Assembly (NCBI GenBank): GCA_013265495.1
Contig: MU058233.1
Span: 469,038-533,037, forward strand
From: Vicugna vicugna
Lineage: Eukaryota
Length of the DNA: 64,000 bases
Direction of reading: 5' to 3'
In this document: piece by piece, positions 21,494 through 63,574 of the stretch
How positions within the stretch are numbered: position 1 is the stretch's first letter
Layout of the letters: each line of letters starts with the position of its first letter
The notes under the pieces: model-generated
What the model was told of the DNA's origin: nothing
The model's input: only the letters and a program-made list of their open reading frames with translations
Database searches by the model: none
Program-made: the position numbers and the translations under genes

Positions 21494-21623
21494 NNNNNNN
21501 NNNNNNNNNNNNNNNNNNNNNNNNNNNNNNNNNNNNNNNNNNNNNNNNNNNNNNNNNNNNNNNNNNNNNNNNNNNNNNNNNNNNNNNNNNNNNNNNNNNN
21601 NNNNNNNNNNNNNNNNNNNNNNN

Positions 21624-21625
<2 letters not shown>
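21494..21625. other. Assembly gap covering the distal 5' UTR and the first two bases of the start codon
   Basis: Run of N inside the CpG island. Confidence 0.99.
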
Positions 21626-21902
<277 letters not shown>

Positions 21903-37226: not shown

Positions 37227-37658
<432 letters not shown>

Positions 37659-38321
37659 TGAGCAGAGGCAGGAGACCTGCCCCAGGTGGGTCACAGCCAG
37701 GGAGAGGCCAAACCGGGCCAGGAACCCAGGGGTTGGGGGTAGGGGTGCTCAGCTGAGGCGGGGCGGGAGGATGCACTTGCTGATAGGCTGGCCCCGTTTC
37801 CCCATTGCGTCTGTCAGGCTCCGCCGACTACAGGGTGTCCAGCGTGTCTGTAATGCGTGGGGACCAGGCTCATTGCTAAGTGCTCTCCATCTGCTAAACT
37901 TAAGTGAAATGCAGTGTGTCTGCGAGACGGGGAGGGAGTCATGTCACTTGTGGTTGGTGGTCCAGGTGCAAGGAGCAGCCCTGCCCCGGGGCCTTCCTCT
38001 GCAGCTGCTGGGGGTGAGCCCTCAGGGGGAGGGGCTGTCCTTGCTGGGATGGGGCTGGGAGACGGGTCAGGGGTTCTCTCCCCGAGTGCAGGGTTCTGTC
38101 CTAGGTGTCGGCTCAGCACTGCAGCTGCTCTCCTCTTCAGGGACTCACTGGTTTGCGCCTTCTTTTCAGAGATGGGTTTTCTTGGTGTTTCACACTCCAC
38201 TTTCAACTCCCTTGGGGATTGGAAGGCTGGTGAGGGGGCAGCATGTCTCAGGGACCTGGGCTGGATGGGGGGTCTGCAGGCACACCTGCCCAGGTGGACA
38301 CGTGCTCTTTCTTCCATGCAG

Positions 38322-39653
38322 GTGTGCTCCCCAGAAGGGGGGCCGCTCCCAGCCAACCACTGGGACCAGAACAGCCCGGCCCAGCACCAGCAGCAGCTCC
38401 AGCCCAGCCAGCCCCAGGGGTCACTCCCAGCCCCGTGTCAGCGCTGCCAGCCCTGTGGGGCTCTCCCGGACCCTGGGCAGCCCTGCCAGCCCCAGCGGCC
38501 ACTCTCGGGTCAGCGCAGCTGGCCCCAGCGGTCACTTCCAGGCCCAAGACGGCCCTGCCAGCCCCGGCGGTCACTTCTGGGCCCAGGTCAGCCATGCCGG
38601 CCCCAGCAGCTGCTTCCAGCCCCAGATCAGCACTGCCGGCCCCAGCGGTCACTCCTGGCTCAGCCCCACCAGCCACGTTGGGCACTGCTAGCCCCCAGGC
38701 AGCGTTGCCGGCGCCTGCGCTCCCTCCTGGCCCCGTGGCAGCGCTGCCGGCCCCTGCGGTCCATCCTGGCCCCCTGTCACCTCTGTCGGCCCCTGCGGTC
38801 TATCCTGGCCCCATGGCACCGCTGCCGGCCCCTGCGGTCCATCCTGGCCCCGTGCCACCTGTGTCGGTCCCTGCTGGCCCTCTGGCACCGCTACTGGCCC
38901 ACGCGATCATGGATGGCCCCACGTCTCCGCAGCCAGCCCAGCAGGGCATCCTCGGGGCAGCGGTACCGGCCCCTTCGGTCACTGCTAGCCCAGTGCCAGC
39001 GGTGCCAGCCCCCACAGTCACTCCTCATGCTGCGTCCACGTCGCCGGCCCACCAGCTCACTCTCAGGCCAGTGCTGCTGCCCCCGGCGAGCATCCCTAGC
39101 CCTGGGCCAACCCCGAAGGTCCCTCCTGGGCCAGCCCAGCCGCCCTCGGCGGTCGCTGCTGGGCCTCAGTCAGCCCCAGCAATTAGTTGAAGCCCCAGAG
39201 CAGCCTGGCCCCACCAAGTCTTCGCTGCTGGGCCCCGGACAGCCGTGCCAACAAAAGCGGCCACTCATGGACCCAGAACAGCCTCACCCACCCAAGCGGC
39301 CACTCCTGGGCCCAGAGCAGCCGTGCCGACGAAAGCGGCCACTTATGGGCCCGAAACAGCCCTGCCAGCCCCTGCGGTCACTTCTTGGCCCAAGCCAGCC
39401 CTGCAAGCCCCAGCCATTACTCCCCATACCCGAGCGCCCGTCACTCCTGGGCCGGCCAGCCCCACCCCGCAGGCCTCTCCTGGGGCCCCCAAGCCCGCCA
39501 CGGCAGTCCCTGCTGGACCTGGTTCGGGCCCATCAGCCCCAGCTCTCACTCTTGGCCCTGGGCCAACCCTGCCGGCCCCTGAGGTCACGACGGACTCGAT
39601 CCTCTGCCCCTGCAGTGGCCCGCCAGGCCCCGTCTGTGAGCCCCGGAGCCTGA
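38322..39653 (+). CDS. FBRSL1: Putative alternative terminal exon 3 of a short N-terminal FBRSL1 isoform (443 aa + stop; Pro/Gln/Arg/Cys-rich 13-aa repeats)
   Basis: Pyrimidine tract and acceptor gtgctctttcttccatgcag|GTG TGC TCC, phase 0 and compatible with exon 2. It is the 3' part of track ORF 37914-39653, open to TGA at 39651-39653. Human FBRSL1 is recalled to have short isoforms using an alternative stop-containing exon 3. Confidence 0.75.
   Translation: MCSPEGGPLPANHWDQNSPAQHQQQLQPSQPQGSLPAPCQRCQPCGALPDPGQPCQPQRPLSGQRSWPQRSLPGPRRPCQPRRSLLGPGQPCRPQQLLPAPDQHCRPQRSLLAQPHQPRWALLAPRQRCRRLRSLLAPWQRCRPLRSILAPCHLCRPLRSILAPWHRCRPLRSILAPCHLCRSLLALWHRYWPTRSWMAPRLRSQPSRASSGQRYRPLRSLLAQCQRCQPPQSLLMLRPRRRPTSSLSGQCCCPRRASLALGQPRRSLLGQPSRPRRSLLGLSQPQQLVEAPEQPGPTKSSLLGPGQPCQQKRPLMDPEQPHPPKRPLLGPEQPCRRKRPLMGPKQPCQPLRSLLGPSQPCKPQPLLPIPERPSLLGRPAPPRRPLLGPPSPPRQSLLDLVRAHQPQLSLLALGQPCRPLRSRRTRSSAPAVARQAPSVSPGA
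38390..39590 (+). repeat. Degenerate 39-nt coding minisatellite (~30 units)
   Basis: Unit resembles CTGCCGGCCCCTGCGGTCCATCCTGGCCCCGTGGCAGCG. Near-identical copies at ~38740-38880, more diverged copies on both sides. Translates as PC(R/Q)P(L/Q)R(S/P)LL(G/A)PxQ. Confidence 0.88.
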
Positions 39654-40883
39654 CACCCATTTTGGCAGACCACCGCAGGTGTGGCTGTGCAGGGCGGGGC
39701 CGAGGCCCCTCACCCTGCCACCTGAGATGCGCTGTCAGACTGGCCGGAGGCCTTCTCCAAGCAGGCCGGGCTGTTGGCAGTTGGAAGCTGAGGCTCAGCA
39801 GAGGCAGGAGCCCCCTGCAGGGCTGCCACCAAGCTGAGGCCTGCCCACGCCAGGAAGAGAGGAGAGGACCCGCAGCGGCTTCCCACCTCCCCGCCACGGC
39901 ACCCCCGCCGTGCCCACTGCTTTGTGACGCGCATGCCCCGGGGAGAGGGGACACAGCCACCCCCTGAGGCTCAGACTTGGGGGGGCCCTCAGCATCTCTC
40001 TGTGCCTCTGAGGTGCCCACGTACACCTGTCCCAGCTGCGCTGAGTGCGAGTTTGTGTGTGAACGTATGTGGCATGTGGTCTGGAGTGTGTGCGTGTACG
40101 TTGGAGGGGAGCCTTGCCCTCCTTGGGCCCTACTCAGTCCCCCACCGGCAGGATGTAGGCACAGCTGGAGCGGGGCCTCAGGTCCCGCTTACCTTCCCTC
40201 AGGCAGAGGGTGATGTGTGTCCACCTCCAGGGCCCTGTGGCGGGGGAGGGGGCGTGAGGGGCGCTTAGGGCCGTCTGTGGTTGAGTCTGAACTGCTGGTG
40301 ACGAGGAGGGTCTCCCTCAGGACTCTGCCTCCACCCCAGAGGCTGAGCGCTGAAGTGGGGGGCAGAGTCTCACGTCCCCCCTAGCTTTGGACCAAGAGAG
40401 CCTGCAGGACCCGAGGCCATTCTCAGAATGTCCCCTTCCTACAGCTTTCCCACTGCTGGCCCCCTATGATGTCCCCTGTTGGGACACACCCCGCACTGCA
40501 GGGCTTTCTCTGCCCCACCCACCTCACACCTGTGCTCAAGGTCACCCATCCCTCGCCCCAGGCCTCTGACTCAGGGCAGCCCCACACCAGTGCTCCTGGA
40601 GCCCCGGGCACGTGGTGGGCAAGCAGCACCGGCCACAGGGGGCGCCCTGGCCAGGCTCCCAGTCAGCGCTTTGTGCGCCTAGTCTCACGGAGCCATGACA
40701 GCCACCTCCGGTACTGGCCCGGTTCGTGGAGGCCACAGAGGGGCCCCTCTGTTTCTGGGTCCAGGCCTTCCTCCCTGGCCTCCCGGGGTCCTGACGAGCC
40801 AGACGTGGTGTCTGCCCCGTAGCCTGGCACCCAGAGCAGGGCCCCAAGGTCTCCCTCCCAGAAACGTGGGGCTTATTTTTCTG

Positions 40884-40898
40884 ATTAAAGGAAATAAA
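40884..40898 (+). terminator. Candidate intronic poly(A) signal (ATTAAA + AATAAA) for the short isoform
   Basis: ATTAAA at 40884-40889 and AATAAA at 40893-40898, followed by a T/GT-rich stretch, ~1.24 kb after the alternative exon's stop codon. Confidence 0.5.
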
Positions 40899-43204
40899 AA
40901 GTGCTGTGCCATTATTTTTATAACAGCATCAGTGTTTGTAATTTAACAGACAAGCATGTGCCGTGCGGGAAATGGTTTATTCCGACAGGTGGTTCTCTGC
41001 ACATCTGTGCTTGCCTCTCGCTCGTGACGTCCTGGCTGAGCCGCAGGAGAGCGGCCCAGGGAGGGGGGCGTGCAGCCTGGACACAGCTTGCTGCATTATG
41101 CAGCTTGGGGGGATTCCAGCGTGCCATGATTGCCCTCCAGGCCACCCTGGCAGCCCCCTTGCTGGGCTGGCTCCTCCCATCCTGTTTCTCGGAGCCCTCG
41201 CTCGGGAAGGGATTTTTTCCTAGATGCCCCTGAAGGTGCCTCTGAGGTCTTGTCATTGACCCCTCGAGTTCCCACTGTCCCCTTGTCATGCCCTGAGGAT
41301 GGTGAGGCTTCAGGCGCCCCTCCTTCCCACTCCCCTGGAATCCTCCCCACCTGAGGGGCAGTGTGGGCACCTGTGCCCCGTGGGCCCCGTGCGTGCTCAT
41401 GTCTGGGTTGGTCACAGGCGGGCCAGGCCTGCACAGCGTAGCCACTGCCTTCCAAGGCCTTTCTGCTCAGGGAGTGTTGGCTGCAGTGCTTGGTTGCCAC
41501 TTAAGGGGGAAGACAGAACTGTTGGGCACCAGCGCTAATGGCAGGAGAGAGCAGAGGCCACAGCCCCCTGGGCTGAGCGCACAGGGTGCCCGCAGCCAAG
41601 GTCTGGGGCTGCCCTACTTATCCATCCAGAAGGGCCCCACCCTGGGTGACCCCTAGGGTGAGTAGGGGTGGGGCCTATTCCCTGCACAATCACTTGCTGA
41701 AGAAGGAGCTTGGGTTCCTCTGAGCCCAGAGAAGCCCACCGAGCCCTGTGCGTGACTTCCACCCTCACCATGGCTGGCCTCAGGTTCAAAGTGCCAGGAC
41801 CCTGAGGGGCGGGCACTCCTGCGAGGCACCCGCTGGCCGTGTCAGGGACTAGAGGACATGTGTCGTGCGTGTCCTGGGGGCTCGTGTTGCCGTAGGTCCT
41901 GTGTGGCCAGGTCTTCATGTTTCTGAGAGCAACTGGAAACCTGGGTTTTTTTGTGGGGTCATTGATTTTTGAAACATTGGTGGCTAATTCTAATTTGATG
42001 ACTCACCTTGTAGGCAGAGAACACAGGTATGTGGGCTCTGTGTGTCCCAGCGGCACAGGTTTGGACCCTGATGACTGATCTGGCCCCGAGGCCAGGAGTG
42101 TGGGGTGTGGCCCACCCTGCCACAGAGAGAGTTGGGCAGCCCTGCCTGATGGGTGGAGGTCTGGAGGAGGCCCCACGCTGCCCCAGGGACCCCAAGGATG
42201 GAGACCGCAGCCTGGGCACAGTGCTCTCCTGGGGCCTCTCCTCCTCTGAGCCCTGCAGCCGCCTTCCCCTCTGCAGTCCAGGCTGTAGGCAGGGGGCTCG
42301 CACCTTCTGTAGAAGAGCCCCCGCTAGGCCCGTGAGGAGCGAGGGCAGTGGTTGTGGTCTGCTGTCGGGTGGAGGCGTAACCAGGTTGCTCCCTGCAGAA
42401 GCAGCACTGACAGGGCATGCTGCAGGTGCCTACTAAGGAGAGTCCCTTGGGATCCCCCCAGAGGGTGGCAGGGCGGCCCCAGGAGGGGAGGGGTGGGAGC
42501 ATGGGTGACCCTGATGGGTCAGTGGGCTCCCAGTCCTTGAAGGGGGTCTGCACGCCCGACCAGCGTCCACCTGGCAGTTCCCTGGGGACGATCGCGTGTG
42601 GAGGTGCTCCCCAGTGAGTGCCTGGTCACTCACTCCCAAAGGTTCTGCGCCTTCACGTTGGCGACGCCGTGGTGGGAACTTGAATGGCGCTGGGCTGCGC
42701 CCTGCCTGGAGCGTCCCCCTGCCCCGTGGAGCCTGTGCTCTGGCAGATACAGAACGTGAGCCAGGGCCTCAGCACGTCAGAAGGGGCAGGCGTGCGTCGG
42801 TCTGTACTGGCGTTTGGCTGGGCAGAGACGCTGGCCAGCCCTCCTCCCCGAGCCGGAGGCTGCACTGACTGCGAGATATCCCCAGCAGCTCGCCAAAGCA
42901 GGGTCGGGGGTGCTGGCCGTAAGGAAGACAGTGTCCGCGTCCAGCGACCCACCCTTGCCTGGAAGACTTGGCAAGAAGCCTGTCCCAGGGCTGGGATTTG
43001 GGGGACCTGAGACTTCGGGGGCCACCACCCAACCCCCTGGGGGGATCCCAGAGGCCTTGTTAAAGGCAGGTTCTGACCCTGCAGGGAAGCTCAGAGCAGC
43101 GACCCTTATGGGAGCTACATCCAGAATCGTAAATGTTCCAGTAGCCACATTAAAAACATGAAAAGAAGAGACGAAAGTAACCCTAGTACATTTTGATCCA
43201 TACG

Positions 43205-43349
43205 CCGTAAGCTCTGTGCATCTGCAGATGCCGAGGGCTGACCGTGCTACGTCCTTTAATATAAGAGACTTGAGCATCCCACATCCGTGGGTTTTGGTAT
43301 CTGCAGGGGGGTCCTGGAACCAATCCTCCACGGATACTGAGGGACAACC
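43205..43349. mobile_element. MER2 (Tigger/TcMar MITE) fragment
   Basis: taagagacttgagcatcc...ttttggtatctgcaggggggtcctggaaccaatcctccacggatactgagggacaac matches the MER2 terminus and TIR. Confidence 0.8.
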
Positions 43350-43869
43350 ATATCCTAAATCCTACTGTTTCAGTACGTAGTCAGTATGAAAATTATCAAT
43401 AGGATATTTGACTTTATTTTTGTCCCAAGTCTTGGAAAGGCAGCGTGTATCTTACTCAGCCCTTCTCAGTTGAAACTGGCCCAGTGTGGCTCAGAGTGGG
43501 CAGGGTGGGGAGGGTCCAGGCAGAGGTGCCCTTTCTCGAGTTCCCTTTCTCCTCACACGTGCTGCCTTCATTGGTGTTCTCCTTCTCTGGCTCGGCCCGC
43601 CCTGTGGTTTGAACCCCAAACACGTGACAGCCCAGGGCCCCCGCTCTGGGCTGCAGGCCTGTGTATCCAGATGCTCCACTCGGATGCCACAGCGCCTCCC
43701 CGAGCGTGAACACGCCAGAACACATGAGCTCCACCCTTCCCCTCATCTCAGCGATGAGCCTTGCGTCTGCCCCAGTGATCAGACCAGAAGCAGGAGTCCC
43801 CTCCCACACTCTCTCCGACCCAGGCCAGCCCTTTGCTTCCACCTCCTAAGTGTCCCTCTGAATAGGGTT

Positions 43870-44390
43870 TCGTTAGAAAATAATTCAAGGCAAATGAAAA
43901 CAAAAATTCATCAGAATGTGCAGGGTGCGGCTAAAGCTGTGTCCGCAGTAAGACCGCCAGCTTCAGGGCTCGTGTTGGAAAAGACTGTGGGTTCAAGATC
44001 CATGACCTTAAGAACCTGGGAAAAGAAGAGGCATCCCAAAGGAGAAAGGAGGAGACGCAGATGAGGGAAGTCGGTGAACAGGAAGCAAACAATCGGTGGA
44101 CGCAGGCAGAAGCGGTTTCCCGGAAAGCATCAACAGAACTGGGGAATCCCTGGTTAGGAAGCTCCCCCTCAAAGAGCAGATCACCAGGGCTGGAGGCGGA
44201 AGAGGAGATACCACGGCAGGGGCCCCAACATTGAAGGATGGGACGGAGACAGTTTCACTCCAGTAATTGAACAACTCAGGTGAGATGAACACATTTTTTG
44301 AAGATTACAATTTACCAAAACTGACTTAAGATGAAATGGATGCTCTGAATAGTCCTGTGTCTGTTAAAGAAACTGTATTTGTCATCTGGA
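43870..44390 (+). mobile_element. Degenerate L1M ORF2 fragment
   Basis: aaatgaaaacaaaaattcatcagaatgtgcagggtgcggctaaagctgtg and gatgaaatgga/aatttaccaaaactgac...ctgaatagtcct match old L1 ORF2 consensus pieces; A-rich, no intact frame. Confidence 0.7.
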
Positions 44391-44504
44391 TGTCCGTGCC
44401 TCCCCATCACTGCCAGCCCACCACCATCTTAGCAGCTGAGAGAAGGTGACCTTATCCAGCGTTTGGGCACTGTCCCTGGGGGTAACGGAGCAACTCACTT
44501 AACC

Positions 44505-44695
44505 GGACCACACCCTGTTATGACCATTTTTCAGATGAGGATACTGAAGCGAAAAAGAAGAAGGAAAAACAAAGCAAAACAAAAAAAATCCAAACGAAGA
44601 AGCATTTAAGTAACTTGCCCAAAACAAGCAGGAAAAGTGGCTGAGTCAGGAATCAAACCAGGATCGGCTCCAGAATCCACGCCCTTGACCCTGAC
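44505..44695 (-). mobile_element. MIR SINE interrupted by an A-rich stretch
   Basis: ccatttttcagatgaggatactgaagc ... ttaagtaacttgcccaa...ggaatcaaaccagg. Confidence 0.7.
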
Positions 44696-47600
44696 CTTTT
44701 CCTGGAATGCAGCAGCCGCAGCCTCAGCAACTACTGGCCTCCTCCTGTCTCCCTGCCCCTGCCCGTCTGCAGCAGCCACGTTTCCTCTGAGGAGCCCATT
44801 TGAGCACGCCCTTGCCTTGATATTCCTCCCTGAGGGCTTTTGGGGTTAGTGAGTGAAAGTCAGAACCACGCTGGTCCCGTGGAGCTGGCACAGCAGTCTG
44901 GCTCCTGCTGCGGTGATGGGTGCTCCCACCTCCCCCACTCTAGGCCTGGGCTGTAGCTTGAGGAGCAGCCGCCTGGGGCTCCCCTGGGTGGCTCTGCAGT
45001 CCTCACCGGCGTGTGGGCCACACACACGGAGCCAGGGCCACGGCTTGGCCACTTGGTCGCCTCAGGCCAGTGACTGCTCCCTTCTGGGCCTGTATCCTCC
45101 TCATTGGGGCTGTCCAGACCACATGCGTCTCAGGTTGTCGAGATGGGAAACTGAGCTGGCGTGCGCTGTCCCTGCTGGATGCGCGTAACACACACGGATC
45201 CGCTGCCGTTAATGCGATGACTGCTCTATCATTCATTACTGTGGGATGGTTTCTCCCGCCTCTGGGGTGAGACCTGGCCGGCGAGGCTGGCTCATCTTCG
45301 GCCTCTTTGGCAGGCTCACCTGGTCCCCTCGGGGTGGCCATCCTGGAAGGGCCTGTGGGGAGAGCCTTGGGCGCCTGTGCCTGGGGCCGTGGAGTCCCAG
45401 GGGGTGAAAGCGAGGCTGCCCTCAACCCCTGAGCACCCGCCCCCGGCACGGCCCTCCTGTGAACCGAGCATCGTGGGGGCCTTGCTGGCAGGCTCTGCTG
45501 GGAGGATGGTGGCGGAGGGTGGGCGCCCGGGGTGTCCCCTCCCCCCGCCTGCTGCCAGGTCACAGCCTCAGTGGGAAGGGAGGGCTCGCCATCAGCATGT
45601 GCTTCTGTGGGCTTGGTGGTCAGTTCCTGTGTGGGCCCCGGGATGCCACGGTGACTGAGACAGGTGACAGCCCCTGCCTTCATGAAGCTTCGATTCCAGA
45701 CAGGCATGAAACGAATCGGGGGGTTTTGAGGTGATAGCCGGCCTGCCTGGGAATGGAAAGGAGGCAGCTTTAGACCAGGGGACTGGGGAGGCCTCTTCCA
45801 GCAGGTGACCAAAGCTGAGGCCCGAGTGAGCAGGAGACACCTGGCCAGTGCCCCCTAGGCGAGCATGGACATCTCTGTTCTGCAGGGGGGCAGCTGGGGA
45901 GTTTTAATCAGCACAGTGACATGAGTTATGGTTTTAAAAACTCACCCTTGGGGGAGCTGGGCAGCTGTGGGATTGACTGGGGGACTGTTGCAGCCGGAGG
46001 GCGGGGCATGTGGCTTGAATCAAGTCGTTAGTCCTTTGGGCAGATGGGGACAGCGATGAAGCCCAGAGGACCTGCCCCTGCTCTGGAGGCACATGTACCA
46101 GAGCCCACTGACCACTGTGGGGCAAGACACGGCTGCCTCACCCCTGTCCATCCGGCAAGAGGGACCACACTCAGGCCCAGGCAGGGCGCCGCAGACACTC
46201 ACGGGCACTTGGTCACATACAGCTTGTGTCGCCTGGGGCCTGCTGGCCATGCGTCTCCTGGGACGGTGGCCTCCACTCAGCCAGCATCCTCTGTGAATCT
46301 GTTTAACACCTCCATTCCCCCATCTGTGCCTCATCTCCCACTCACCCGTCTGTCCATCTGTCCACCCACCCGAGTCCCAGGGGAGGAATGTGGAGCAGTG
46401 CGGGGTGGCCAGCCCCAGAGGGCAGCAAGCATTCTCCCTGGCTCCGCTGGCTGTGGGAACATGCGGTCACCGCCTCGCACTGCTGGAGCCCCTCCTCCCT
46501 GTGCCAGGCCCAGCGCGCCACGTGAAGGGGACAAAGGACTGCTCCTTTGGGCATTCGCAGCCTATTACAAGGAGAGGGACACCCAGCCAGCGACCCTGCC
46601 TCGCTCTGAGAGGGACCCCTGGGGCCACAGGGCCCTGAGGGGCCTTTCCCCAGCCTGGCTGACGGAGGCGTAGAGGGAGAGTCGGGAGGAGTTCCAGGAA
46701 GAGGCAGGGCCCGCCCAGAGCCTGGGTAGGCATTAGCTAACCCAGAGAGAGGGAGCACCAGGGTGTCCTTACAGCCGACACCCTGGCTCTGGCGCCTCGA
46801 CCCCACTTGCAGCCCCGAGAGCCCCTCCCGCCTCCCTCCCGCGGGCACACGGCGGCTGCAGTACCACACTTCACCAGCAGGCGCTGCTGTCATTGGATGA
46901 CGCGGTGTCCGAGTGACCTGGAGGTGGTGGGTGGCGTGCACACAGAGGAGAGGCTGCAGGCTTGTGGGGTGGGGAGCAGGGCCTGGCCTTCCCTGCGCAC
47001 CCCAGCATCTCATCCTTCCACCAGCCCCACTCACGGGTGTGTTTACATGGTCTGCGTGAAGTGTCCCCTCCCTGGCCGGCCTTGCTCTGTGGCCCTGCCC
47101 TGAAGTCCACACCTCCCCGAGGCAGCTCCTGCCCAGGTTCCCACAGAACTGGAGGCACAGCACAGACCTCTGCCAGACACAGGTGTGGGCACCGAACTTG
47201 GAGGGCTGGGGCGCACTGAACAGAATAAAGTGTATGACACCCTCACTGCTGTTACATGCTGGGGGTGGAGGGAGGTCACCCCGGGCCGAGTGCTGCTGGG
47301 TAGGGCAAGGGTGCAGGTTCAGTGGGGTTGGGAGGCCCCACTGAGCACCAGGGACCCGAGTGCCTCTTGACAGTGGAAAAAGCAAGCATGTGGGGTCCGG
47401 CAGACACCCAGGCCTGGGGACACAGAAGGGGCTTCCCGAGCAGAGCTGGGGGTTTACAGCCCTGGGGCAGTGAGGTACCAGGTGTGACGGAGGGGGCAGG
47501 GAGTGGGACGCCCAGGGAGAAGGGGGCCCCCACCCCTGGCACAGCGCAGGCCCCAGACCCTGCACTGTGAGAGCTTCAGGTGGACAGGACAGGCCATCAC

Positions 47601-50399
47601 CCCCAACTCAGCCACATGAGGCACCTGCTCCAAGGGTTAATGCCAGGATTTGGGGCCACAGAAGGCACTGGACGCTGGGATCAGCTGGAACGAGCAGGGA
47701 AGGCGGGGTTGGGGGAGGAGGCCAACGAGTTCTCATGAATGAACACAGCTCAGCCCCCCAGTCCAGCTGGCAGGGGCCCAGTCAGGGCCAATGGCTTGGC
47801 TTCGGCTGCTCACTCAGCAGGGGCCTCGACCTGGAGCGCCCAAGGAGGTCTCTGGGACCCGGATCCACCGTGATCCATCCCTGGGAAGGCCCAGGGGTTT
47901 TAGTGCCCTCCAGAGGGCACAGTTGTCAGGGGGGTCCCTGAGAGGAAAATGGGGTGCTGTGAAGAGCAGGGAGTGAAGAAGTGGCCAGGAGGAAGGTCTT
48001 CCCCTCAGGCCTGGGCTGCCACGTGGCCCCAGGTCAGGGAGGCCAGGTGTGCGCACGCACGTGGAGGTGGGGGATGGAGGCAGGATGGGGCACCTGGGCC
48101 GTCGGGAGTCTGTGCTCAGTTTCTGCAGGGGCGTCGTGGGGTTGGTTGTGGGGACGCTGGTTCCAACTCCCTTCCTGTCAGAATGGTAGCCTCGCTGTCT
48201 AGGGGCTGAGGAAGGGTCACTGGGGCTTGGCCGGTGCCTGCCCCTTGCCCCACCGCCCAGAGCCTGCCTCCAACTGGTTTGAGGGAGTCTGAGGGTGTCC
48301 TCAGCCACATCCCCCTTCTCAGGCTTCCCCAGGGTCTGAGGCCAGGCCTGCAGGTGTGGGGGCCAAGTGCGCCTCTCTGGAGGCCACTGTGGTCCAGCCG
48401 TGGGTCAGAGGCACCTCCCAGCCCTGGAGGAGGAGAGGTGTGGGGCAGAATCCAGAGCCCTCAACGCCGTGTGTGCTCGTGTACGCTCCCGAGAGCTCCG
48501 TGGAATGACCGTTGTCCGAGGGTGAAGCCGTCTGGTGGGGTGTGAGCTCCTGCGGGGGCTGCCATGGACAGCTGTTCAGGCTGTGCACTGCACAGCTCCA
48601 GGGCACTGTTCCCACTGTCTCCACTGGTGACATGTGCATCTGTGACGTGTAACAGTCGAGCGTGCCGGCGGTGGGGGGTGCCTCTGCTCCGTCTGCACGG
48701 AGGGGCTCTGGGGGTAGTCGGAGCCTGTGTGCACCTTCCAGTGGGGGTCTCTGCAGGGTGGTGAGCGCAGAGTGTTGGGCAGGTGTCAAGAGCAGGTGGG
48801 CGCTGTGTCCAGATGTTAGGTGGGTGTGGGGCCATCGAGGGGCTCTGGGTGCCCCTTTGTGTCTGTGAAGGGATTGGGGCGGGTTCAGAGTCCCAGTGAG
48901 CTTGCTCGCTGCTGGAGAGAGGGGTGCCCAGGGCTCCTTGGTCAGCCCCAAGGTGCCCCAGGCACAGGTGGCTTCCTGTCCCCCACAGCCTGGGGGGCAG
49001 CCTAGGTCCTGCCTCTTGGGCCCCTTCTCAGCTGTGCCTGGACAGGCCACCCTCAGCCCCACACCCTGTGGGTCTGATCACCAAGTGGAACCACATGTTG
49101 CCTGTCTGCGGCCGAGAGCACTTGGCGGCCGGCCCAGGAGGCAGACGCTTCCTCCTGGAATGTGCAGCAGAGCCCGGGCTGGGGGCCCTGCCAGAGAGGG
49201 GTCACAGGAGGGGGTTCTTCATGGGCCAGCCGCCATGGCCTCACTGTTACTGCTAGAAGGCCCAGGACATGCCAAGATGAGGGCAGTGTCCCTAATGCTG
49301 CTGGTCTGACAGCAGTGCCCTAACCACGCTGGTCTAAGGGAAATGTCCTCTCCCCACCTTTCTGACGGCTGTGACCTGACCGTGCCAGGTTGAGGGCAGC
49401 GCCCTACTTTTCACACAACCACGAGTCTGAAGGCAGAGCCCTGGCCCCTCCAGTCTAAGGGTGTGTTTTTGGAAGAGCTGGCTGTTACGTGTTCAGGAAT
49501 TTTGCAGGCCAGCTGTTAAACTATCGGTAGCTGGAAGCAGCCACAGTGTGAGTGTTCTCCGCGCAGAAACAGAAACTGCAGGCGCTGCATGTCAGGCTCC
49601 CCTCTCCCCCAGGGGCCCCTTTGCCCCTACCTCTCCGATGGCCTCATGGCCCACTTCCACTTTCAGAAGGGTCACCTTCAGTGAGGCCCGCTTCTCTGCT
49701 GTTGTCCTTCCAAAGCACCTGTGGCCGTCTGCCGGCGTGTGCTGGCCTCTTCTCTGAGGGTTCGGGAGGGCGGGCCCTTGTGTCTGTTTGTGTCCACTGC
49801 CCAGAACAGAGCCATCTCACGGGCACTCAGTAAGCACTGGGTGGGTGGTGGATGAACGGTAGATGGGTGGGCAGAAAGATGGATGGATGGATGGGTGGGC
49901 GGACAGTCCCAGGGACTGTAATCTTGTCTCTCCAGCCCCAGCTGGAAGTGGAGGCGTGCCATCCCTGGCTTTCTGGCATAGCTGGCCAGCAGCACTTCTA
50001 AGCAGGTAGGAAGCAGAGAGGGCACCAGGACAGCCAGACCCGAGCTTGGTGACCGGCCATCCCAGTGTGTCCAGGATTGGGGTGGTTCCCAGGGCACATG
50101 ACTGTTTCACAGGATTTTCTGAGACATGGGACTTCCAGAGCTAAAACCAGCCACCTGAGGAAGGATGGCTGACCCCAGCCTGCCCTCTCCGGCAGGGCAC
50201 CACCGAGGAGTCAGCATAAGGTATCCCCTCTGGGGACCAGCTCAGAGGAGACAACTCGTGTGAACGTATGAAGTGGAACGTGGCATCCTCCCTCCTCGCA
50301 TTCCAGCTATGTGTGGGTTGTTCTTCAGCCTCTGCTTCTCCTCCCCACCTTGCTGGGTGTCCTTGTGCAGTGAGCAACCTGCACAGCTGTACGCAGCAG

Positions 50400-50580
50400 C
50401 CCTGCACCAGGCCTTTCCAGTCCTTGTAGTATCTCTGGGTCCAGCCACCTTCTTCTGCGGCAGGGACCCTGCCCTGAGCTCAACCCAGAATACTGTCCCC
50501 CAGCAGTGAGACCATCCCTGACAAGCTTCTGGGTGCCGCTGATGCTGCTGGTCCAGGGACCCCACTTTGAAAACCATTGG
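50400..50580. mobile_element. MER5A (hAT-Charlie) fragment
   Basis: gctgatgctgctggtccagggaccccactttgaaaaccattgg matches the MER5A end. Confidence 0.75.
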
Positions 50581-51934
50581 ACGGGGGCATTTGTTTTCTC
50601 GCAGAGACTCCCCTCAGCAAGGCAGCCAGGAAGGTCCCCCGGGCTGGGATTGTCCCTCCTTTTGGTGAGGCCTATCATGAGGTTCAGAGGCAAGAAAGGC
50701 CCATTCCCACGGGGCAGTGAGAGCCCAGCTGGTGACAACAGGGACACCTAGGGGCTTCTCAGTGCTGGTCCTGGGCTCAGGCTCACAGGCAGAACCTCTC
50801 TCTCACCCCCATAGTGCCTGTGAAGGCTGAAGGCATCCCCATGTCACAGATGAGGAAGCTCAGGCTTGAGGAAGGTCGGACGAGGCAGCACTAGTTCAGG
50901 GTCTCCGCGTTCACCGTTTGGCTGAGCAGGGTGGAGCCAGTGAGGCTGGGGTCCCACAGGCTCGTGACGGGGGTGGGGGCAGGGGGTCCTGCCTGGGGGA
51001 GGCCTGGGACCCTGCTCTGGGCCTGCCGCGGGGAGGGAGGGTGGTACCGAGGCCAGGGCTTCCCGCAGGTGTGGCTAGTCCAGCTTCCCGAGGGGGCTTG
51101 CTCTCGCCTGAGCCCTGGCACCCTGCGCCCCAGGTTGACACTGGTTCTGTGTTTTGTCATTACGCTCTGCCCTCTACACAACGCAGGGATCAGTGGCTTG
51201 GCAGGGGTTGCATCGCACTTCAGGACCTAGGGCCGCCCTGGGGGCAGGGGCTCTGAGGCGCTGCCTTGAGAGGGGCTTCTGGCTTAGCCCACCATGGGGT
51301 CTGCAGGAGGAAGGGCTCAGGCCATGAGAGGGTTCCGCAGGGACCCGAGAGTCTTCCAGAGCGTAGCTGGCGCACCTTGCTCACCGGTCCTGGCCTTTCA
51401 CCCCAGCTGGGGTCTCCAGGGCTGAAGGACGCTTAATGACAAAATGGCTGGGTGTGGAGGACTGGGCCTCACTGACCTTGGTTTTGGGGCAGATTCTCAG
51501 CATTCCAGAGCTCTGAGAGTGTGTGCACTGGGCTGGGAGGCCTGGTGCGTAAAGAGGAGGGAACATCCCGCAGTGTCCCCACGCTGTCCCATGGGGACAT
51601 TGGCAGCACCTGCGGCAGGAGTCATGGGGTGCTAGGCAGCGTGCTGGCCAAGAACCATGACTTCGGAAGGTTTGGACTGTCAGTGTGTGTCCAGACAAAG
51701 ATGCGGGAATGAGAGGTGGTGGGACAGCAGAGCTCACTAGGTCCTGCAGGGAAGGCCAGGGTGGGGGCAGCCAGGAGCTGAGGAGACCAGGAGGTGGGAG
51801 GTGAAGCCAACGTGGTTCAGGGGTGGCGACTTCCTGGGCCTGGGAGGGTGAGGGGGTCAGGGGCTGTGATGTGCATCCCTTCCCCGCAGCTTTGTGAGGT
51901 GTGAAATTATTTCCAAGTAAAAATTAAAACACAA

Positions 51935-52215
51935 GCAGGCTTCTGAGTCTACTTCCTGCACTGTCACTTAACCTCTCTGGGCCTTGATTTTCTCCTCTGT
52001 AAAATGGGCACAAAGTGTCTAATCAGGGCTTTTGTGTGAAGAGTGAAAAGCTAAGGGCAGGCTCTCAGTGCAGCCATGTCTCTGGAGATTCCGGCAGGTA
52101 TGGGACAAGGCAGCAGCTAGCCTAGTGGGTACTACTTGCTTCATTCTGCAGATGACAGAACTAAGGCACAGAGAGGTTGAGTAATGGCCCTGGGACACAC
52201 AATGGGGAGTGGCCC
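51935..52215. mobile_element. Two MIR fragments in opposite orientation
   Basis: gtcacttaacctctctgggccttgattttctcctctgtaaaatggg (+) and cagatgacagaactaaggcacagagaggttgagtaa (-). Confidence 0.6.
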
Positions 52216-52704
52216 GGTCACACACAGCTCTGCAGATCTTGCAGCCCGGACTGCCCACCGTGGATTGTGGTGAGGACTGAGGAGGCCTGTGAGCGGTGGG
52301 CGTATGGGGAGCAGGAACAGGGGTGAATTGCCGCCGCTGGCCTGTCTTGACGCCCGGTGACCCAACCCTGGTGGAGGGGAACAGCTCAGGCAGCCCACTG
52401 GCCTGCTCCCCATCCAGGCGTCTTTCAAATCATCCGCCGGCTGGAGGGAAGGGGGCCACTGCAGTTTTGTCATCCTGTGCCAGCCCTTCGCCCCCCGCGG
52501 GGCACCTCTTTCCCATTCTGCATAGGAGTGGGCATTACTGGGCTGTAAATGGTCAGCTCTGCCCCTCCCGCCCCCTCCCTGGGTTTCGGCCCAGAGGGAT
52601 GGGGTCGGGGTGGGGGTGAGGCGCCTGAGCCTGGCCGTGTGCCTGCCCCACCCCACAGGCAGGGCCGTGGTGTGTTTGCTGAGCCCGTCTCTCCCTGTCC
52701 CCAG

Positions 52705-52809
52705 ATGAAGGTCACAGTGTCCAGAGGGGGCGACCACAACAGTGATGGCGACAGCTTCCGAGAAGCCACCAGCTCCCGGAGGAGCAGTTCTCGGGACCAG
52801 CTCAGTGAC
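52705..52809 (+). CDS. FBRSL1: FBRSL1 canonical coding exon 3 (105 nt, phase 0/0)
   Basis: Acceptor ctctccctgtccccag|ATG AAG GTC; encodes MKVTVSRGGDHNSDGDSFREATSSRRSSSRDQLSD; donor GAC|GTGAGT. Recalled human sequence: [30 protein letters not shown]. Confidence 0.94.
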
Positions 52810-54881
52810 GTGAGTACCCCAGCCCCTCACCGCAACGTTCCTGGGTCCCCAGGGTGACTGCCGCAAGCCCTTTGCTTAGGGGCCCGGAGTCTCACTTGAG
52901 GGTTTTGTGCTCACAATTAGCATTCGCCTTCATTAAAACATGATTTTTCACTAACTAGGACTTCCCTGTCGGGGGCATTTAAATGAGGAACTACCATTCC
53001 GCACAGGCAGGAGCCGGTGGAGGCGGCTGTGGGGGGGCTCTGTCCAGTGGGGCTGGGCGCGGGGTGGGTGCCAGGCGGTCAGCAGCCCACCCCGCTCCAC
53101 TTGCTTCCACAGGCAGAGTTGTGGTCTGGGAGGCAGGACTCCCGCCAGTGTGTTTACCAGAAAGGGCGGTGGGAAGTGCGACTGGCCAGGCGAGTGGTCC
53201 TGCACTGCAGGGAACAAGCCGGAAGTTCTCCCACCCGCCCCGCGGACCGCCCTATCCGCTCAGGCCAGCAGCCTGCACGGTGAGGTGGCGGTAGGGTGCC
53301 CCTCTGAGGCACAAGCTGGCCTGGATCTGGGGATACCCTTCGGTGTCCTGTCTGAAAGACAGGTCCCTGAGCTTAGGTCCCTGGGGGCACCAGTGTGGGG
53401 GGGCCCCAGGGGCTCCCACTGGGGTTTGACCAGTGACGGGGGTGCTGGGTGGCCTTCCAGGGCCCCTGCGTCTCCCTAGAGCTTGGAAAGAGTGGATGGG
53501 GCTGGTGCAGCAAGGGCTAGGAGTGGGGGCAGAGGGGCCCAGCGGGGAGGACTCAGGCGGAAGGGTCCCCCAGAAGGAAGCTTCGCTCCCGGAAGAGGCC
53601 TTTGTCTCCTTGACCCCCAGCTGCAGAAGTGGCCGCGGAGCAGAGGTGGGTTTTCTGCCGGGCTAAATGGAACAAGTCTCTTCATTATCATTTAAATGGA
53701 GGCTGGGGGAGGGCGGGCGCGGAGGCCGGGAGGAGGGCCTAATTGCCCGGCTCCGAGCTTGTAGCCACAAGACGGGAAAATAGGCTGGTAATTGTCTGGG
53801 GCCGCGGGGGCTGCCCTATTTCGAACTCCTCTAATTGTCGGCCAGGGTGAATGGAGAGATTCTGAGCACAGCAAGGGCCGGCGTGAAGGCGCATGCTCGT
53901 GGGCAATTATGATGCCTTAGCCACCCCCTTCGGCAGGGCCAGGGTCTGCCTGGGGAAGGGGGAGGGGTCCCCCAACCCCTGCTGAGCAGAGTGGAGCCGC
54001 CCAGGCTGCAGTGCCGCCTGCCCTCCCAGACGTCCCTGGGTCCCTCCCAGTGCATGCTGGACCCTGGTCTGTGGTTCCCACATCCTGGACAAGCCCGTTC
54101 TCGCCAACTGCTGGAGGCCCCCCTCACACACACCTGCCCAGCCAGTCACCGCGTCCTGTCCTCCTGTGCCTTGGAGGTCAGCCCTGGTGAACACCACCAG
54201 CCCTGGGGACCTTGTGAAACACACTTAACTGGTTTCTTTCGTCAGGTCAGAAATGCCCATTTGAGCCAAAGGGAGCCCCATCCAGCACTGGGTCACCCTC
54301 ATGGGGCTTCCTGGGATGGCTGCCAGCCTCCCGGCCACAGCTGACCCATCTGACACCTGAGGCCCAAAGTTACCCGCCCAGCTCCTCCTCCAGGAAGCCT
54401 TCCCTGAGGTTCCCCGCTGGACCTCGTGACCCTGGGAGGCTGGTGGGTGACAAGGGACAAGTCGACCTGAGCATAGAGGAGTTTGACCCCCCGCCCAGAA
54501 CCATGTGTAGAACCCAGGGCTGGGTCTCTGGGAGGGGCCGAGACCTGGCCAAGGGTTGAGCCCATCCCTGAGGAACATCAGGGCTTTGCCTGCCTCTCTG
54601 TTGGGGTGACTCTGCTGGGCTGGACCACGTCTCCCGGGTCTGGGGGTGGCAGGTTCCTCATGAGGGTCCTCAGGGCTCCGTGATGCTCTGCTGTGTGGTC
54701 CCCAGCCCTCACGGCCCCCAGCCCAGAATGCCAGCAGAGACCCAGGAGTGGTCTAACTGGCCTGGCTTGGGCTCACAGTATCCTGCCAGGCAGGTTCTCT
54801 GACTGCTCAGGTCCTCGGGGGGAGGGTGGCCATCGAGGGGCTGCGACCTGGTTTCTAACTGTCCTTCTTCCTTCTCTGCAG

Positions 54882-54917
54882 AGCTCGGCGCAGGCGGTCT
54901 CAGGCAGAGGTTACTCC
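54882..54917 (+). CDS. FBRSL1: FBRSL1 coding exon 4 (36-nt microexon, phase 0/0)
   Basis: Acceptor ttctaactgtccttcttccttctctgcag|AGC (branch-like CTAAC upstream); encodes SSAQAVSGRGYS; donor TCC|GTAAGT. Recalled human sequence: SSAHAVSGRGYS. Confidence 0.93.
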
Positions 54918-56799
54918 GTAAGTCTCCCGCTCTCCCACTGTCTGCTCCCCACATGCCCCTCGGGACCCCCGACTGTGCTGAACGCTGCCTCCAGGCTGGA
55001 AGTGGGTTTGTACAGGGGTGGGGATGGGGCCAAAAGTGGGCCAATTCAGAGGGCCCGTCACTCCCTCCCAGGGTCCTGCCCTGCAGCCCTGGCCTGCGAG
55101 GAGTGGACGGTGGGGCAGGACACTCCACCTCTGGGGCCGGTGGGGCAGCGCTTGGTGTCGGGGGCCCCGGGCATGGAGCAGCACCCCCCTGCCCTGACAC
55201 CCTCTCCCCTGTCCATGCTCAGCCCAGGCCAGGGAGGCTGCACTGGGGCATGAGCGCCCTAGCTGTCGTCAGGGGTCTGGTAGGGGGAGGTCCAGGGGAA
55301 GGAAGGGGCAGGCCTGTGGTGGCTGATACTCCAGCTATGGCAGGGGTACCCTCCCTGTCCCCCAGCCCCCTCCTCACATCCTCACGACTTTATTTCATTT
55401 CTCCTTAAGTATCAGGAGGAACGTTAATGACACCATAAACCCCAGAGCTCCATAAAGGCCGTTTCTACAGATTTACAGCCATTTCGGCTCACTGGAGGGC
55501 AGGGGCCCAGGCTCCGCCTGCCTCATCCCCACAGCCCCTGATTTACTGCCAGTTCCCAAGTGCCAGGGTGTGACAGGCTGGCTCTCTAAATCACAGCGGC
55601 TTTTTATAGGGTGTGTAATTAACCCATTAATTCCCTGGTGGTGGGGACAGCCATGGATCCCTGGCCCTTCCCTCCCCCAGCTCCCCAGCCCCCAGGATCT
55701 GCCAGCCCAGGAAGTCTGCCTTCTGCCTCCGGCCTGGCCAGCCATAGCGTCTACGAGTCGTTGACCGGGGGCGCTGCGTATCTGGGCGGTGGTCCCGGTG
55801 CCACCTGAGGGGAGTTCCCTGGGGAGGACTCTGCCCTCCTTGGGCGGCCTTGGTGCTCTCAGCTGTTGTCACAGTCATGGTTGGCGGCCCCAGGCTGCTC
55901 CTGCCTCCCACAGACCTGGGCAGGCCGACCATGCCTACGGCCCCTGGGAGTTGACCATGTTGGCAGAGCAGCGTTCGGGCCAGGGCCTGGGCCAGGACCG
56001 GGCTCCAGGCGGGAACAGAGCAGGCAGACCTGCACTGTGGGAGGCGACTGACAGTGACGCGCTGGGTGGTACAAATCGGGACTGGGGAAAGCTGGGACAG
56101 TGATGGGGACAGTGGGGGGCCAGAAGGCCCACCAGCACGCACCAGTCCCGGTGGGTCCAGGAGTCCTGAGGGGCTGGGCTTGGGGATGCCCTGTGCCGAG
56201 TCATGGCTGAGAGACCCAGGGCCGCTGGGATCTCCCTTGGATGGCCGCTCTGCTTCCACATCCCCACACGTCATTCATGGTCTTCTCCCCAGAACGTTGC
56301 TTTGAACGTTGCCTGGCGAAGACCCTGTGATTGACCCGCCAGCTGCTTGCAGCTTAACCCCCCACAACCGCTGCACAGGAGTGACAGATGGCGTCAGGCA
56401 GGGCCCAGCCTGCTGCTGAGCCATGGGGGTCCCTGAACTGTGTCTGCAGACGGTCTGCAGGTGTGCCAGCTGGGCCCTGCTGTGTGCCGGCTGGCACTGC
56501 AAGGGCATGTGGTCGACCTGGCCCTGGTAGTCCTCTGGTCCACTTGGTGTGATGGCAGGTGGGGCTGCCCCTGGGGCTGGAGGAGTGGGAACGGGGCCCA
56601 GAGGACCCTTGCCCAGTAGGTGGAGGCTCTGGGCTGGGGCCAGAGGGATAGGGCTTGGGGGCCAGCTGGGCCGAGCTCAGGGCAGCTGCACTCCAGCCTC
56701 TAGATACGGACTTCGCCGTGGAGCCCTCAAACTGGAGGGTGCACGCTCAGGTGGGGCTGCTTCTGTGTGGCTCTCAGCGAAAGGGGAGTGTGTGGGGTG

Positions 56800-60100: not shown

Positions 60101-63100
60101 CGCATCCGTGGTTGTTATTCCCAGGGGAGCAGACCTGATGTGGAGATTGACAGGGGTGAGGCTTGATTTTGTGGTCTGCGCCCTTAGAAGGAGGGCGGGA
60201 GGGGAGATTGCCCAGGACAGCTGGACCGTTCATCGTGGTCCTGGGTCAGTGGATGGGGCACCAGGAGAGGTGTGGCCTTGGGGGCCTCTGCTCCTGAGCT
60301 TCCTGTGGGCAGGCACCGCAGGGGCCACTGCCACAGCTGGTTCTTCCTAAAGGGGGTCTCGGCGCTGAATCAGGGGCACCCTCAGATAGAGCAGGGACTG
60401 AATAAGTGGTGAAGAAGAGGAGCAGGTGACCCGCACAATGCTGTAAATGTCGACGGTGCCGGCAGAGGGGTGCTGGGTGTGAGGGGCGCTGCCTGTGGTG
60501 GGGTGCGGAGTATGGGGGAGTGTACTAGACTTAGAGGGCTGCTGTCGGGGGAGGGGTTCCGGTATGAGGGAAGGAGTGCTCAAGGATTCTGGATTTTATT
60601 GGCATGAGCCATTCCGAGTGGAGCGGCATGCGTCTGACCACTTTCCTGGCCTGGGCAGTCGCATGGACGCATTGCTGTATCTGGCCAGCCTCTGCAGGCA
60701 GCTGAGTCCCTCACTCTGCTGTCCCACATGGAGGTCAGCCCAGCCAGGGTGGGTGTGCACCAGGCAGGCCAGGGCAGCCCAGGGAACAAGGGATGGGCAC
60801 CTTGGAGGGTCCTGGGGACCCACCCTCCTGGCCAGGAAACATCCCACCCCCACCCTTCTGTCCTGCCAGATGCTGGAGGGGAGGAGGCACCTTGTGCTCC
60901 CTGGGAGTTCCCATCCCAGCATCGTGGCCCTGAGCTTGTGTGTACTGGGGTGGGGAGGCCATCCGAGAGCCCCCACGGGTCACTGTCAAGCTGGGATGTC
61001 ACAGATCTGGACAGCTACTTGCCCCTAGGGCTTTGGGCATTGAGGAGTTAGCGCTTGACCCAGCAGGATGGCTTGGCCCTCCAGCGCAGTAAACACTCTG
61101 GCTCCTGGTTCTGCTGTATCAGGAACACTACCAGAGCTGCCTGCAAAGGTCACGTGTGGCCTCAGGTGCTGAGCAGGGGAGGGGTAGGGATGGCAGTGCC
61201 AGAGGCCACTAGCCCCCGCCTGCCTGGGGGCTGCACCGCAGTCCAAGTTTCTGCGAAGCCCTGCCAGGGGTGAGGGGCCGACTGGGCAGGGCCCAGCAGG
61301 GTCTCAGGTTGGGAGATGGAGAGGGGGAGCTGCCACCAGGCTGGGTGCCACCCGGTGCCTCAGTCTTCTCGTCTGTGAGAAGGTGGAGCCGCGGTACCCG
61401 CCGCAAAGGGCTGTGGGCAGAATAAACGGGCCCGCCAGGCACCTGCTGTTACTGCCAACTCCCTCGCTCTGCACTGTGGGGCGGGTCGCTGTCACCTGCC
61501 ACGTGTCTGCCTGTGGCATCACTGAGGGCTGTGGCCTCTGTGCCGCCCGTCCTGGGGCCCTGCTCCACTGGGCTGCAGCCGAGCAAGTCTCAGCGTCCCT
61601 GCCCTGGTTGGGGGCCAGTGGCAGAAAGCAGGTACGCCAGCGGCAGGTACTTCCAGACCGCGCTGGCTGCTGTGGTGGCACCTGGTGGCAGCCGTGGCGG
61701 GGGTCAGGTCAGCACCCCAGAAGAACAGCAGGGACGTCAGGCTGAGGGCAGACGCAAGGTGGGGTGCAGGTGCGCCGGGGCCCCAGGGGAGGAAGGGAGG
61801 GCCCTCCGGCTCCGGCCTCAGCGGGGCTTGTCCCAGCCACCCAAGCGCATCGGGCCCTTTGGCGCTCCTCGGTGGGCAGCCCCTTGGGAGCTGTGGGGAG
61901 TGGTCAGCAAGGCGGACTGGATGCTGGGAGGTGCTCTGCTCCAGCTTGGGGCCTGGAGCCCCAGGCTGGGTTTTCCGGGCCCCAGGGCAGGGTGATGTGG
62001 GTGTGTCCCCCCAACCCACGTGTCTTGTGCTGTCATCAAGCAAGGGTTGGATTTAGTGGCAGGAGAGCGTTCGCTCATGAAAAACCCTCCAGTCTCTGTG
62101 GCATTTTTCAACCGTCTTTAAACCTTCCCCACTCCCATTATTTTATTTCAAACTGGCAGCAACCTGGTGAAGAGGCACCAGCCACTGAGAGGCAGAAGCT
62201 GGGGTGCACACGGCAGCCCACTGACCAGAGAACATCCCCACCCAGCACATGCGGGGTGCGGCCTTCTGTGGGCCCCAGATTTGCGCCCCCTGGTCACTTT
62301 GCAGGGACTGCCAGGGAAGCCACTCCAGATGCCCTCTGGGGCCCCTGCCCTGCAAGCCCCTCTGGCTCCACGCGGAGCCCCTGGCTTCCACACAGGGTCC
62401 CTTTCCTCCCCTGCTCTCCACGTGGAAGGCTCCAGACACTCTAGATGCCACTGGCACCCCAGAGCTGTCTTGTCACACCCCGCTGCTCTGTGAGCTCAGC
62501 TCTGGGGGCTCTCCTGCCCACCATGGTGTGGCCGGGCTGCAGGCCACAGGCGCTCACCTGGCTCCTGGGAGGGAATGGGCTCAGCCTCTCCAGGGCAGCT
62601 TACGGCCCTCCATGGGGGCCTCTCGGTGGTGCAATAGGATGCTCGGGGCTCCTAGCGGGCAAAGAAGCCATGGGGCTGGCTTGGGTGCGGTCCTCCCCTG
62701 GGTACCTCTCCAGAGGGTGGCCTGCGGGGAAGGGAGTGTGAGGCCAAGCCTTGGACTGCATTGTCACTGTCAAGTGTCCCCTGGGCTGGGACCACACATG
62801 GTATGGACTCTGGGGGTCTTGTGGGGGCCACCACCGCCCCCTCACCTCTGCCGGGCCCTCCCCAGCCTCCTCCCTCTCCCCTCCAGACAGGGGACAGCTT
62901 CTGCCCCTGGACCCCTCTTCCCACCCATCTTGGCCTGCAGCCAGCACCTGGGGCAACTGCAGAGGGGTAGGGGTGGCAGGCCCACTCCCCTCCTGGCCCC
63001 TGCGGTCCCTCCAGTGAGGCCTCACCACGGCTTCCGGCCCCTGCTAGCCCCCAGGGCTTCCTCGCCCCTTACATCACCTGCGTGTCTAATTCCCTGCTGC

Positions 63101-63574
63101 TGGTTGAGGTCCCCAAGTGGGTCTGCCTTTCTGCCTGGACCCTGATCACAAGTTGGTCAGCCGCAGGCAGGCCCCAACCCCTCAGATTAGCCCAGAGCAA
63201 TGAGGCCCCCCCGAGGCCTTGACCTCCCTCACACCTTCAGGCATCGTGAGCCAAAGGCCTCACCATCCTGTCCCTGGAAGCTGGACACAGATGTTCTGGA
63301 CAAACCTGCAGGAGCCCTCAAGGCAGCAGCCAGATGTGCCTGGAGCCACAGCTGGAGGGGTGGTCAGCCCGGGGAGCAGGTGGATGACAGACTGGGCCAC
63401 TGGGAAGCTGACATTCAGTGCTGTGGAACCGGCGGGGCTTCTGGGGCACAGGAGGCTGGGAATTAACGTTAACTCTGTTCTGGTGAAGACTTTTTGTGTT
63501 GATAAATAATTCATAAGGCAGTTAGCGCTCCGAGTCTGACAACACGAGAATATATTAATACAGTCGACTCCACG

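Follow-up and report, generated by a model that had tools for sequence, protein, structure and literature searches.

Does the camelid FBRSL1 gene carry the alternative terminal exon that gives the human gene its short isoforms, or does its second intron hold a GC-rich repeat that happens to lack stop codons? In human, isoform 3.1 joins exons 1 and 2 to an alternative, stop-containing exon 3 and is 589 aa long, and isoform 3.2 starts at an ATG in exon 2 (PMC7519918). Both were validated in human by RT-PCR and western blot (PMC7519918, Ufartes et al. 2020) and are now RefSeq NM_001382741.1 and NM_001382742.1 (PMC12449339); truncating variants in exon 2 or in alternative exon 3 lead to a malformation and intellectual-disability syndrome (PMC7519918, PMC12449339). 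A first-pass annotation of the vicuña locus described these isoforms and the syndrome accurately and proposed that a 443-codon open frame is the camelid orthologue of the exon. Here, we analyze the whole 64,000-nucleotide stretch of Vicugna vicugna DNA in which this frame lies (the window; assembly GCA_013265495.1, contig MU058233.1, positions 469,038 to 533,037, forward strand). Positions 38322 to ~40920 are very probably the camelid orthologue of the FBRSL1 alternative last exon ("alternative exon 3").

Anatomy and annotation of the locus

On the plus strand, 38322-39653 of the window codes for the tail end of the short product as an alternative terminal exon (exon 3), with 443 codons, translated as a basic tail, before a TGA stop (39651-39653). 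Directly 5′ of 38322 lies a strong phase-0 acceptor (ctctttcttccatgcag/GTGTGC; slashes mark splice sites). FBRSL1 exon 2 (37254-37454, plus strand; 67 codons, phase 0 to 0) encodes a peptide ending in PAKQ and closes in phase 0 at a consensus donor (AAGCAG/gtgagc); its in-frame ATG (37260-37262, plus strand; context gacATGg) is the counterpart of the human isoform 3.2 start. The intron from this donor to the alternative acceptor (37455-38321, plus strand) is 867 nt long. The open frame, the acceptor and its phase, the 867-nt spacing and the 13-aa repeats discussed below had all been described correctly in the first-pass annotation. The length of this intron is also a multiple of three (compare L003:3196-4023), yet it contains four in-frame stops, and it is better conserved than the 3′ untranslated region (UTR) (0.88 versus 0.78 nucleotide identity against contig L001).

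With a phase-0 junction to exon 2, a stop of its own and an AATAAA block at 40893, the alternative exon has the makeup of a terminal exon. The poly(A) signals ATTAAA and AATAAA (40884-40898, plus strand) sit in the block TTATTTTTCTGATTAAAG.AAATAAAAAGTGC, ~1.2 kb (1240 nt) 3′ of the stop. From this conserved signal, the putative 3′UTR spans 39654-40920 on the plus strand, with an approximate end ~20 nt past the signal.

Exon 1 was located by tblastn of three proteins (P0007, P0004 and P0014) against the window. Its visible middle part (~21626-21751, plus strand) equals residues 2-43 of the rodent and hedgehog short isoforms, and its ATG and 3′ half are hidden by runs of N at 21494-21625 and 21752-21898 (a third run of N in the window lies at 10503-10912). 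In the orthologues, ~95-97 residues precede exon 2, giving a total of ~605 aa. The product length of ~600 aa first put forward thus agrees with the orthologues and rests on them, since masking of part of exon 1 blocks a full reading in the window.

The alternative exon is positioned in the intron after exon 2 and is left out of the long isoform, as judged from rodent models and from a candidate exon at 52705. In three rodents, a long-isoform model of 1033-1036 aa begins like the short one and extends past the alternative exon. In the window, 52705-52809 (plus strand) is likely the canonical exon 3 of the long isoform, a candidate of 105 nt or 35 codons (MKVTVSRGGDHNSDGDSF...) in phase 0 (ag/ATGAAGGTC...AGTGAC/gtgagt), assigned from the Camelus ferus gene model and from its splice sites. 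If so, intron 2 of the long isoform would run from 37455 to 52704 (15.2 kb), with the alternative exon inside it.

That Camelus ferus model (EPY88296.1; P0021, 844 aa), a match of the profile search described below, is identical to the window in 64 of 64 residues of exon 2 from the ATG, in 25 of 25 residues of an intronic stretch and, at window 52.66-52.81 kb, over 51 residues that include the candidate exon. An Auts2 Pfam domain (PF15336; E = 1e-70) lies at its C-terminus, corresponding to sequence outside the window. The model itself is chimeric (window 37260-39000 and 51486-56556): it runs from exon 2 through the intronic piece, the start of the alternative exon out of frame and the central repeats in frame to downstream exons of the long isoform. 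It also holds one 26-residue double unit (PWHRCRPLRSILAPCHLCRPLRSILA) more than the window, at 38730-38880; camelid lineages may thus differ by 78 nt in repeat copy number, provided that neither the model nor the assembly is at fault.

The chimeric model was the sole camelid entry found, and the protein collection contained no camelid short isoform; camelid annotation of the FBRSL1 locus is deficient. The claim that annotation misses the exon is therefore partly right, for camelids; RefSeq already curates the human exon and NCBI predicts it for many mammals, so it is a known feature and not a discovery. What the present analysis offers to work on FBRSL1 is a quantitative case for selection on the tail across Boreoeutheria, together with a set of conserved tail blocks and the poly(A) block.

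Homology, frame preservation and selection across mammals

Annotated "fibrosin-1-like protein" isoforms aligned end to end with the window peptide in a protein search. They came from Erinaceus (hedgehog), Suncus (shrew), Pipistrellus (bat), the rodents Microtus, Arvicanthis, Psammomys and Acomys, and the non-human primates Rhinopithecus and Mandrillus. Named matches had 50-64% identity at 78-100% coverage (E = 1e-80 to 1e-134), apart from two fragmentary entries with ~40% coverage, and further mammalian contigs matched the peptide at 65-89% identity. The junction ...KQ/VCSPEGGP... is common to all annotated isoforms compared, and the C-terminus ...ARQAPSVSPGA or a close variant occurs in nearly all of them (the Rhinopithecus entry ends otherwise). 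Mean column identity in an 11-sequence alignment was 66%. In one ENA contig (P0009), the conserved stop after ...SVSPGA is replaced by a Trp codon, and the open reading frame is ~190 residues longer.

Homology to the tail of human isoforms 3.1 and 3.2 was established through these same-named primate, rodent, bat, shrew and hedgehog entries, the non-human primates standing in for human. Homology and the shared junction argue for the orthology first proposed, and the stretches identical to the Camelus ferus model, with its Auts2 domain, support both the assignment to FBRSL1 and a camelid origin of the DNA. As annotated orthologues with homologous tails occur in both Laurasiatheria and Euarchontoglires, the exon predates the split of these groups, and the claim that it is older than the primate-artiodactyl split holds.

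The length of the open frame says far less. At 72% G+C, dinucleotide composition predicts ~4 stops per 443 codons in this region, and the probability of a stop-free run is ~0.017. The stop-free frame extends upstream to 37908, and the other two plus-strand frames are also open for 410 and 318 codons across the region. Elsewhere in the window, stop-free stretches with no Pfam match occur at 46345-47607 (minus strand, 421 codons), 5482-6456 (plus strand, 325 codons), 62225-63142 (plus strand, 306 codons) and 45006-45854 (minus strand, 283 codons); tandem repeats were absent from window 44.5-48.5 kb. All of this would suit a chance open frame, in which a GC-rich intronic 39-nt minisatellite without stops is mistaken for a coding exon in camelids, as would the fact that a repeat unit divisible by three spreads an open frame. 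Given the probability of ~0.017 and the other long open frames in the window, length alone is weak evidence, and the cross-species data decide.

The genomic set comprised eight sequences, namely the window, L001, L003, L004, L005 (Erinaceus), L006 (Microtus), L007 (Acomys) and L008 (Arvicanthis); Suncus (P0005) was not located on a contig and is not part of it. Frame 1 contained the terminal stop only in 8/8 genomes and the other five frames contained 1-19 stops, so that it is the only frame open in all eight, including the rodents, where G+C content is 64%, 6-7 stops are expected and composition gives a stop-free probability of ~1e-3 each. Coding length was a multiple of three in 8/8 (range, 373-443 codons; camelid longest). 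In codon-blind nucleotide alignments, gaps in the coding part measured 39, 69, 3, 12, 9, 6, 30, 87, 42 and 48 nt, with one adjacent pair of 4 and 5 nt summing to 9, and gaps in the intron and 3′UTR were of any length (1, 2, 4, 5, 7 nt, etc.). Because indels of whole 39-nt units keep the frame automatically, part of the multiple-of-three signal comes free; the gaps of 3-12 nt remain, and gaps that are in frame without being of whole-unit size speak against a chance repeat.

Pairwise dN/dS (Nei-Gojobori, NG86; alignment guided by protein translation) was 0.25-0.68 in the annotated frame, with a mean of 0.42, and averaged 1.16 and 1.20 in the two shifted frames of the same alignment. The window-L001 pair (dN/dS, 0.25) is free of any concern over translation-guided alignment, as it has 94% nucleotide identity and one gap. 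An excess of third-position substitutions was found in Laurasiatherian pairs (p = 5e-5 to 1e-6). Among the three rodents, dN/dS was 0.41-0.68 and the excess was not significant in 2/3 pairs, and this weak or absent third-position bias indicates looser constraint there. These comparisons of aligned sequence show purifying selection on the annotated frame across Boreoeutheria, moderate overall, and the checks of dN/dS and of frame preservation across mammals that had been proposed for the exon both came out in its favor.

Nucleotide identity to L001 was 0.94 in the coding part, above the intron and 3′UTR values given earlier (0.88 and 0.78), and against hedgehog it fell from 0.78 (coding) to 0.52 (intron) and 0.47 (3′UTR). 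The eight species have almost the same acceptor context (ctctttcttccatgcag), and the poly(A) block is recognizable in 8/8, 0.6-1.5 kb past the stop, with some changes in hedgehog and rodents. The comparative sequence data already contradict a chance origin of the frame: dN/dS of 0.42 in the annotated frame stands against ~1.2 in the shifted ones, the acceptor, the stop position and the poly(A) block are all conserved, and the human orthologue is experimentally validated. We regard a chance origin as exceedingly improbable.

One further contig (L009, Logan SRR23625869) was considered as a species with a frameshifted exon, rejected and left uncounted. Its positions 1376-3723 are orthologous to exon 2 through alternative exon 3 and contain many small indels and stops; in alignments with each of its relatives, gaps recur at intervals of ~20-25 nt. 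The damage extends to exon 2, on which the essential long isoform depends as well, so that L009 is probably a noisy contig or a dead copy.

Repeats, predicted disorder and the FtsK label

Arrays with a 39-nt period cover ~47% of the coding part (Tandem Repeats Finder). A 39-nt (13-aa) array at 38400-38655 (plus strand) has ~6.7 copies with 68% matches, and a 39/78-nt array of RSILAP(C/W)H(L/R)CRPL units at 38691-38874 (plus strand) has 4.7 copies with 84% matches. The latter is the least conserved part among species and varies in copy number. A third 39-nt array, of (K/R)RPL(L/M)GP(E/K)QPC-type units, lies at 39229-39411 (plus strand; ~4 copies, 75% matches). Over the whole tail, the unit is a degenerate 13-residue motif (R-S/P-L-L-G/A-P-x-Q-P-C-x-P-x); the peptide has 16 [RK][SP][LI][LMP] cores, and 7 of the 15 spacings between them are exactly 13 residues. 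The best-conserved blocks are residues 1-20, 81-100, a QCCC block near 250, 361-380 and the last 23, and the Cys/His/Trp repeat core (residues 161-220) is the most variable, with changes in copy number.

The 443 residues are 19% Pro, 15% Leu, 14% Arg, 12% Gln, 9% Ser and 6% Cys, with 70 basic versus 11 acidic residues and a pI of 11.8. Pfam gave no match at E ≤ 1 for the camelid peptide or for two orthologous short isoforms, in line with the first description of a short product that lacks the AUTS2-family region, and NCBIfam gave none at E ≤ 10 for the camelid peptide. AlphaFold2, run on the 11-sequence alignment, returned a mean pLDDT of 40.9, a pTM of 0.13 and a single 12-residue helix, with no fold, and the tail is predicted to be intrinsically disordered. 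As it shows no recognizable domain or predicted fold, the case for its function rests entirely on work in human and Xenopus.

On the strength of a CDD hit, the FBRSL1 papers assign the alternative exon an "FtsK DNA translocase domain", a term still quoted; the camelid orthologue lends it no support. The likeness to FtsK/SpoIIIE translocases is one of composition only, between the Pro/Gln-rich tail and the FtsK linker. The long linker of Escherichia coli FtsK is rich in Pro and Gln. A composition-adjusted BLASTP comparison of the tail with residues 1-1258 of the 1,329-residue E. coli K-12 FtsK gave a best E value of 2.5. With this value, no Pfam or NCBIfam match and no predicted fold, the label looks like a low-complexity artefact, as judged from the camelid rather than the human sequence.

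Two proposed transcript fates and the possible role of the tail

By analogy with the human gene, we infer that camelids splice and translate the exon as an alternative last exon, with two fates open to the primary transcript after exon 2. In the first, donor 37454 would splice to the more distant canonical exon, for which 52705 is the candidate, and the long isoform with its AUTS2 domain would result. In the second, the same donor would use the nearer acceptor, 38322, with cleavage and polyadenylation past the AATAAA at 40893. The product would be ~605 aa from the ATG of exon 1 or ~508 aa from that of exon 2, combining the common N-terminus with the 443-residue basic, disordered tail. Since no exon follows the one that holds the stop, nonsense-mediated decay should spare the mRNA.

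This arrangement resembles that of human isoforms 3.1 and 3.2 in its exon 1 (or exon 2 ATG), exon 2 and stop-containing exon 3, in the lack of an AUTS2 domain, in the position of the exon just 3′ of exon 2 and in size (589 aa for isoform 3.1 versus ~605 aa here), and differs in repeat copy number, which varies between lineages. Human isoform 3.1 associates with YY1 (PMC12449339) and, in yeast two-hybrid assays, interacts directly with SF3B1, in a study that also showed rescue (PMC12690526). By orthology, the camelid short protein may likewise act in the nucleus, in association with YY1 and in direct contact with SF3B1, and do what is beyond the long isoform.

An account centered on regulation would instead have the exon act mainly through intronic polyadenylation, tuning the amount of long isoform, with the tail sequence mattering little beyond being open, basic and disordered. 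It draws on the moderate to weak constraint (dN/dS up to 0.68, little third-position bias in rodent pairs), on repeat copy numbers that differ between species, on the missing domain and mean pLDDT of 41, and on an acceptor and poly(A) block whose conservation at least equals that of the coding part. Experiments on the protein speak against it. Human isoform 3.1 rescues Xenopus morphants, which the long isoform fails to do; a 23-bp frameshift restricted to the alternative exon is pathogenic and abolishes rescue (PMC7519918, PMC11128277); in the heart, rescue was obtained by isoform 3.1 only (PMC11128277). SF3B1 is bound directly by isoform 3.1 and not by the long isoform (PMC12690526), and the tail blocks at residues 1-20, 81-100, QCCC, 361-380 and the last 23 are well conserved. 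We consider a mainly regulatory role unlikely, if less so than a chance frame; regulatory and protein-level readings are nonetheless compatible and do not exclude each other.

An alternative last exon encoding a functional tail, as preferred here, has a parallel in the paralogue AUTS2, whose N-terminal isoform AUTS2-202/003 uses an alternative stop-containing exon 5 (PMC7732068). In both genes, an alternative terminal exon in an early intron yields an N-terminal isoform without the AUTS2 domain; in AUTS2, unlike FBRSL1, this intron follows exon 4. No sequence relationship to the AUTS2 alternative exon was seen, and the profile search gave no AUTS2-type match.

That search, of a profile of 11 orthologues against 1.84 billion representative proteins, in which unannotated exons are invisible, gave ~20 matches and no named non-placental protein. 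Two of the matches, an unrelated perfect tandem repeat (P0022) and a giant protein from an acoel (P0028), were set aside because they look driven by composition or repeats. Tentatively, and with rather more doubt than confidence, the exon could be a placental invention, in which a 39-nt minisatellite expanded in intron 2 and gained an acceptor and a poly(A) site. If that were true, a young, fast-evolving, disordered repeat tail would have become the developmentally critical part of FBRSL1, and the rescue of frog morphants by a human isoform would imply that the tail acts via generic multivalent R-S-L-L/Q-P-C motifs and not through a conserved fold.
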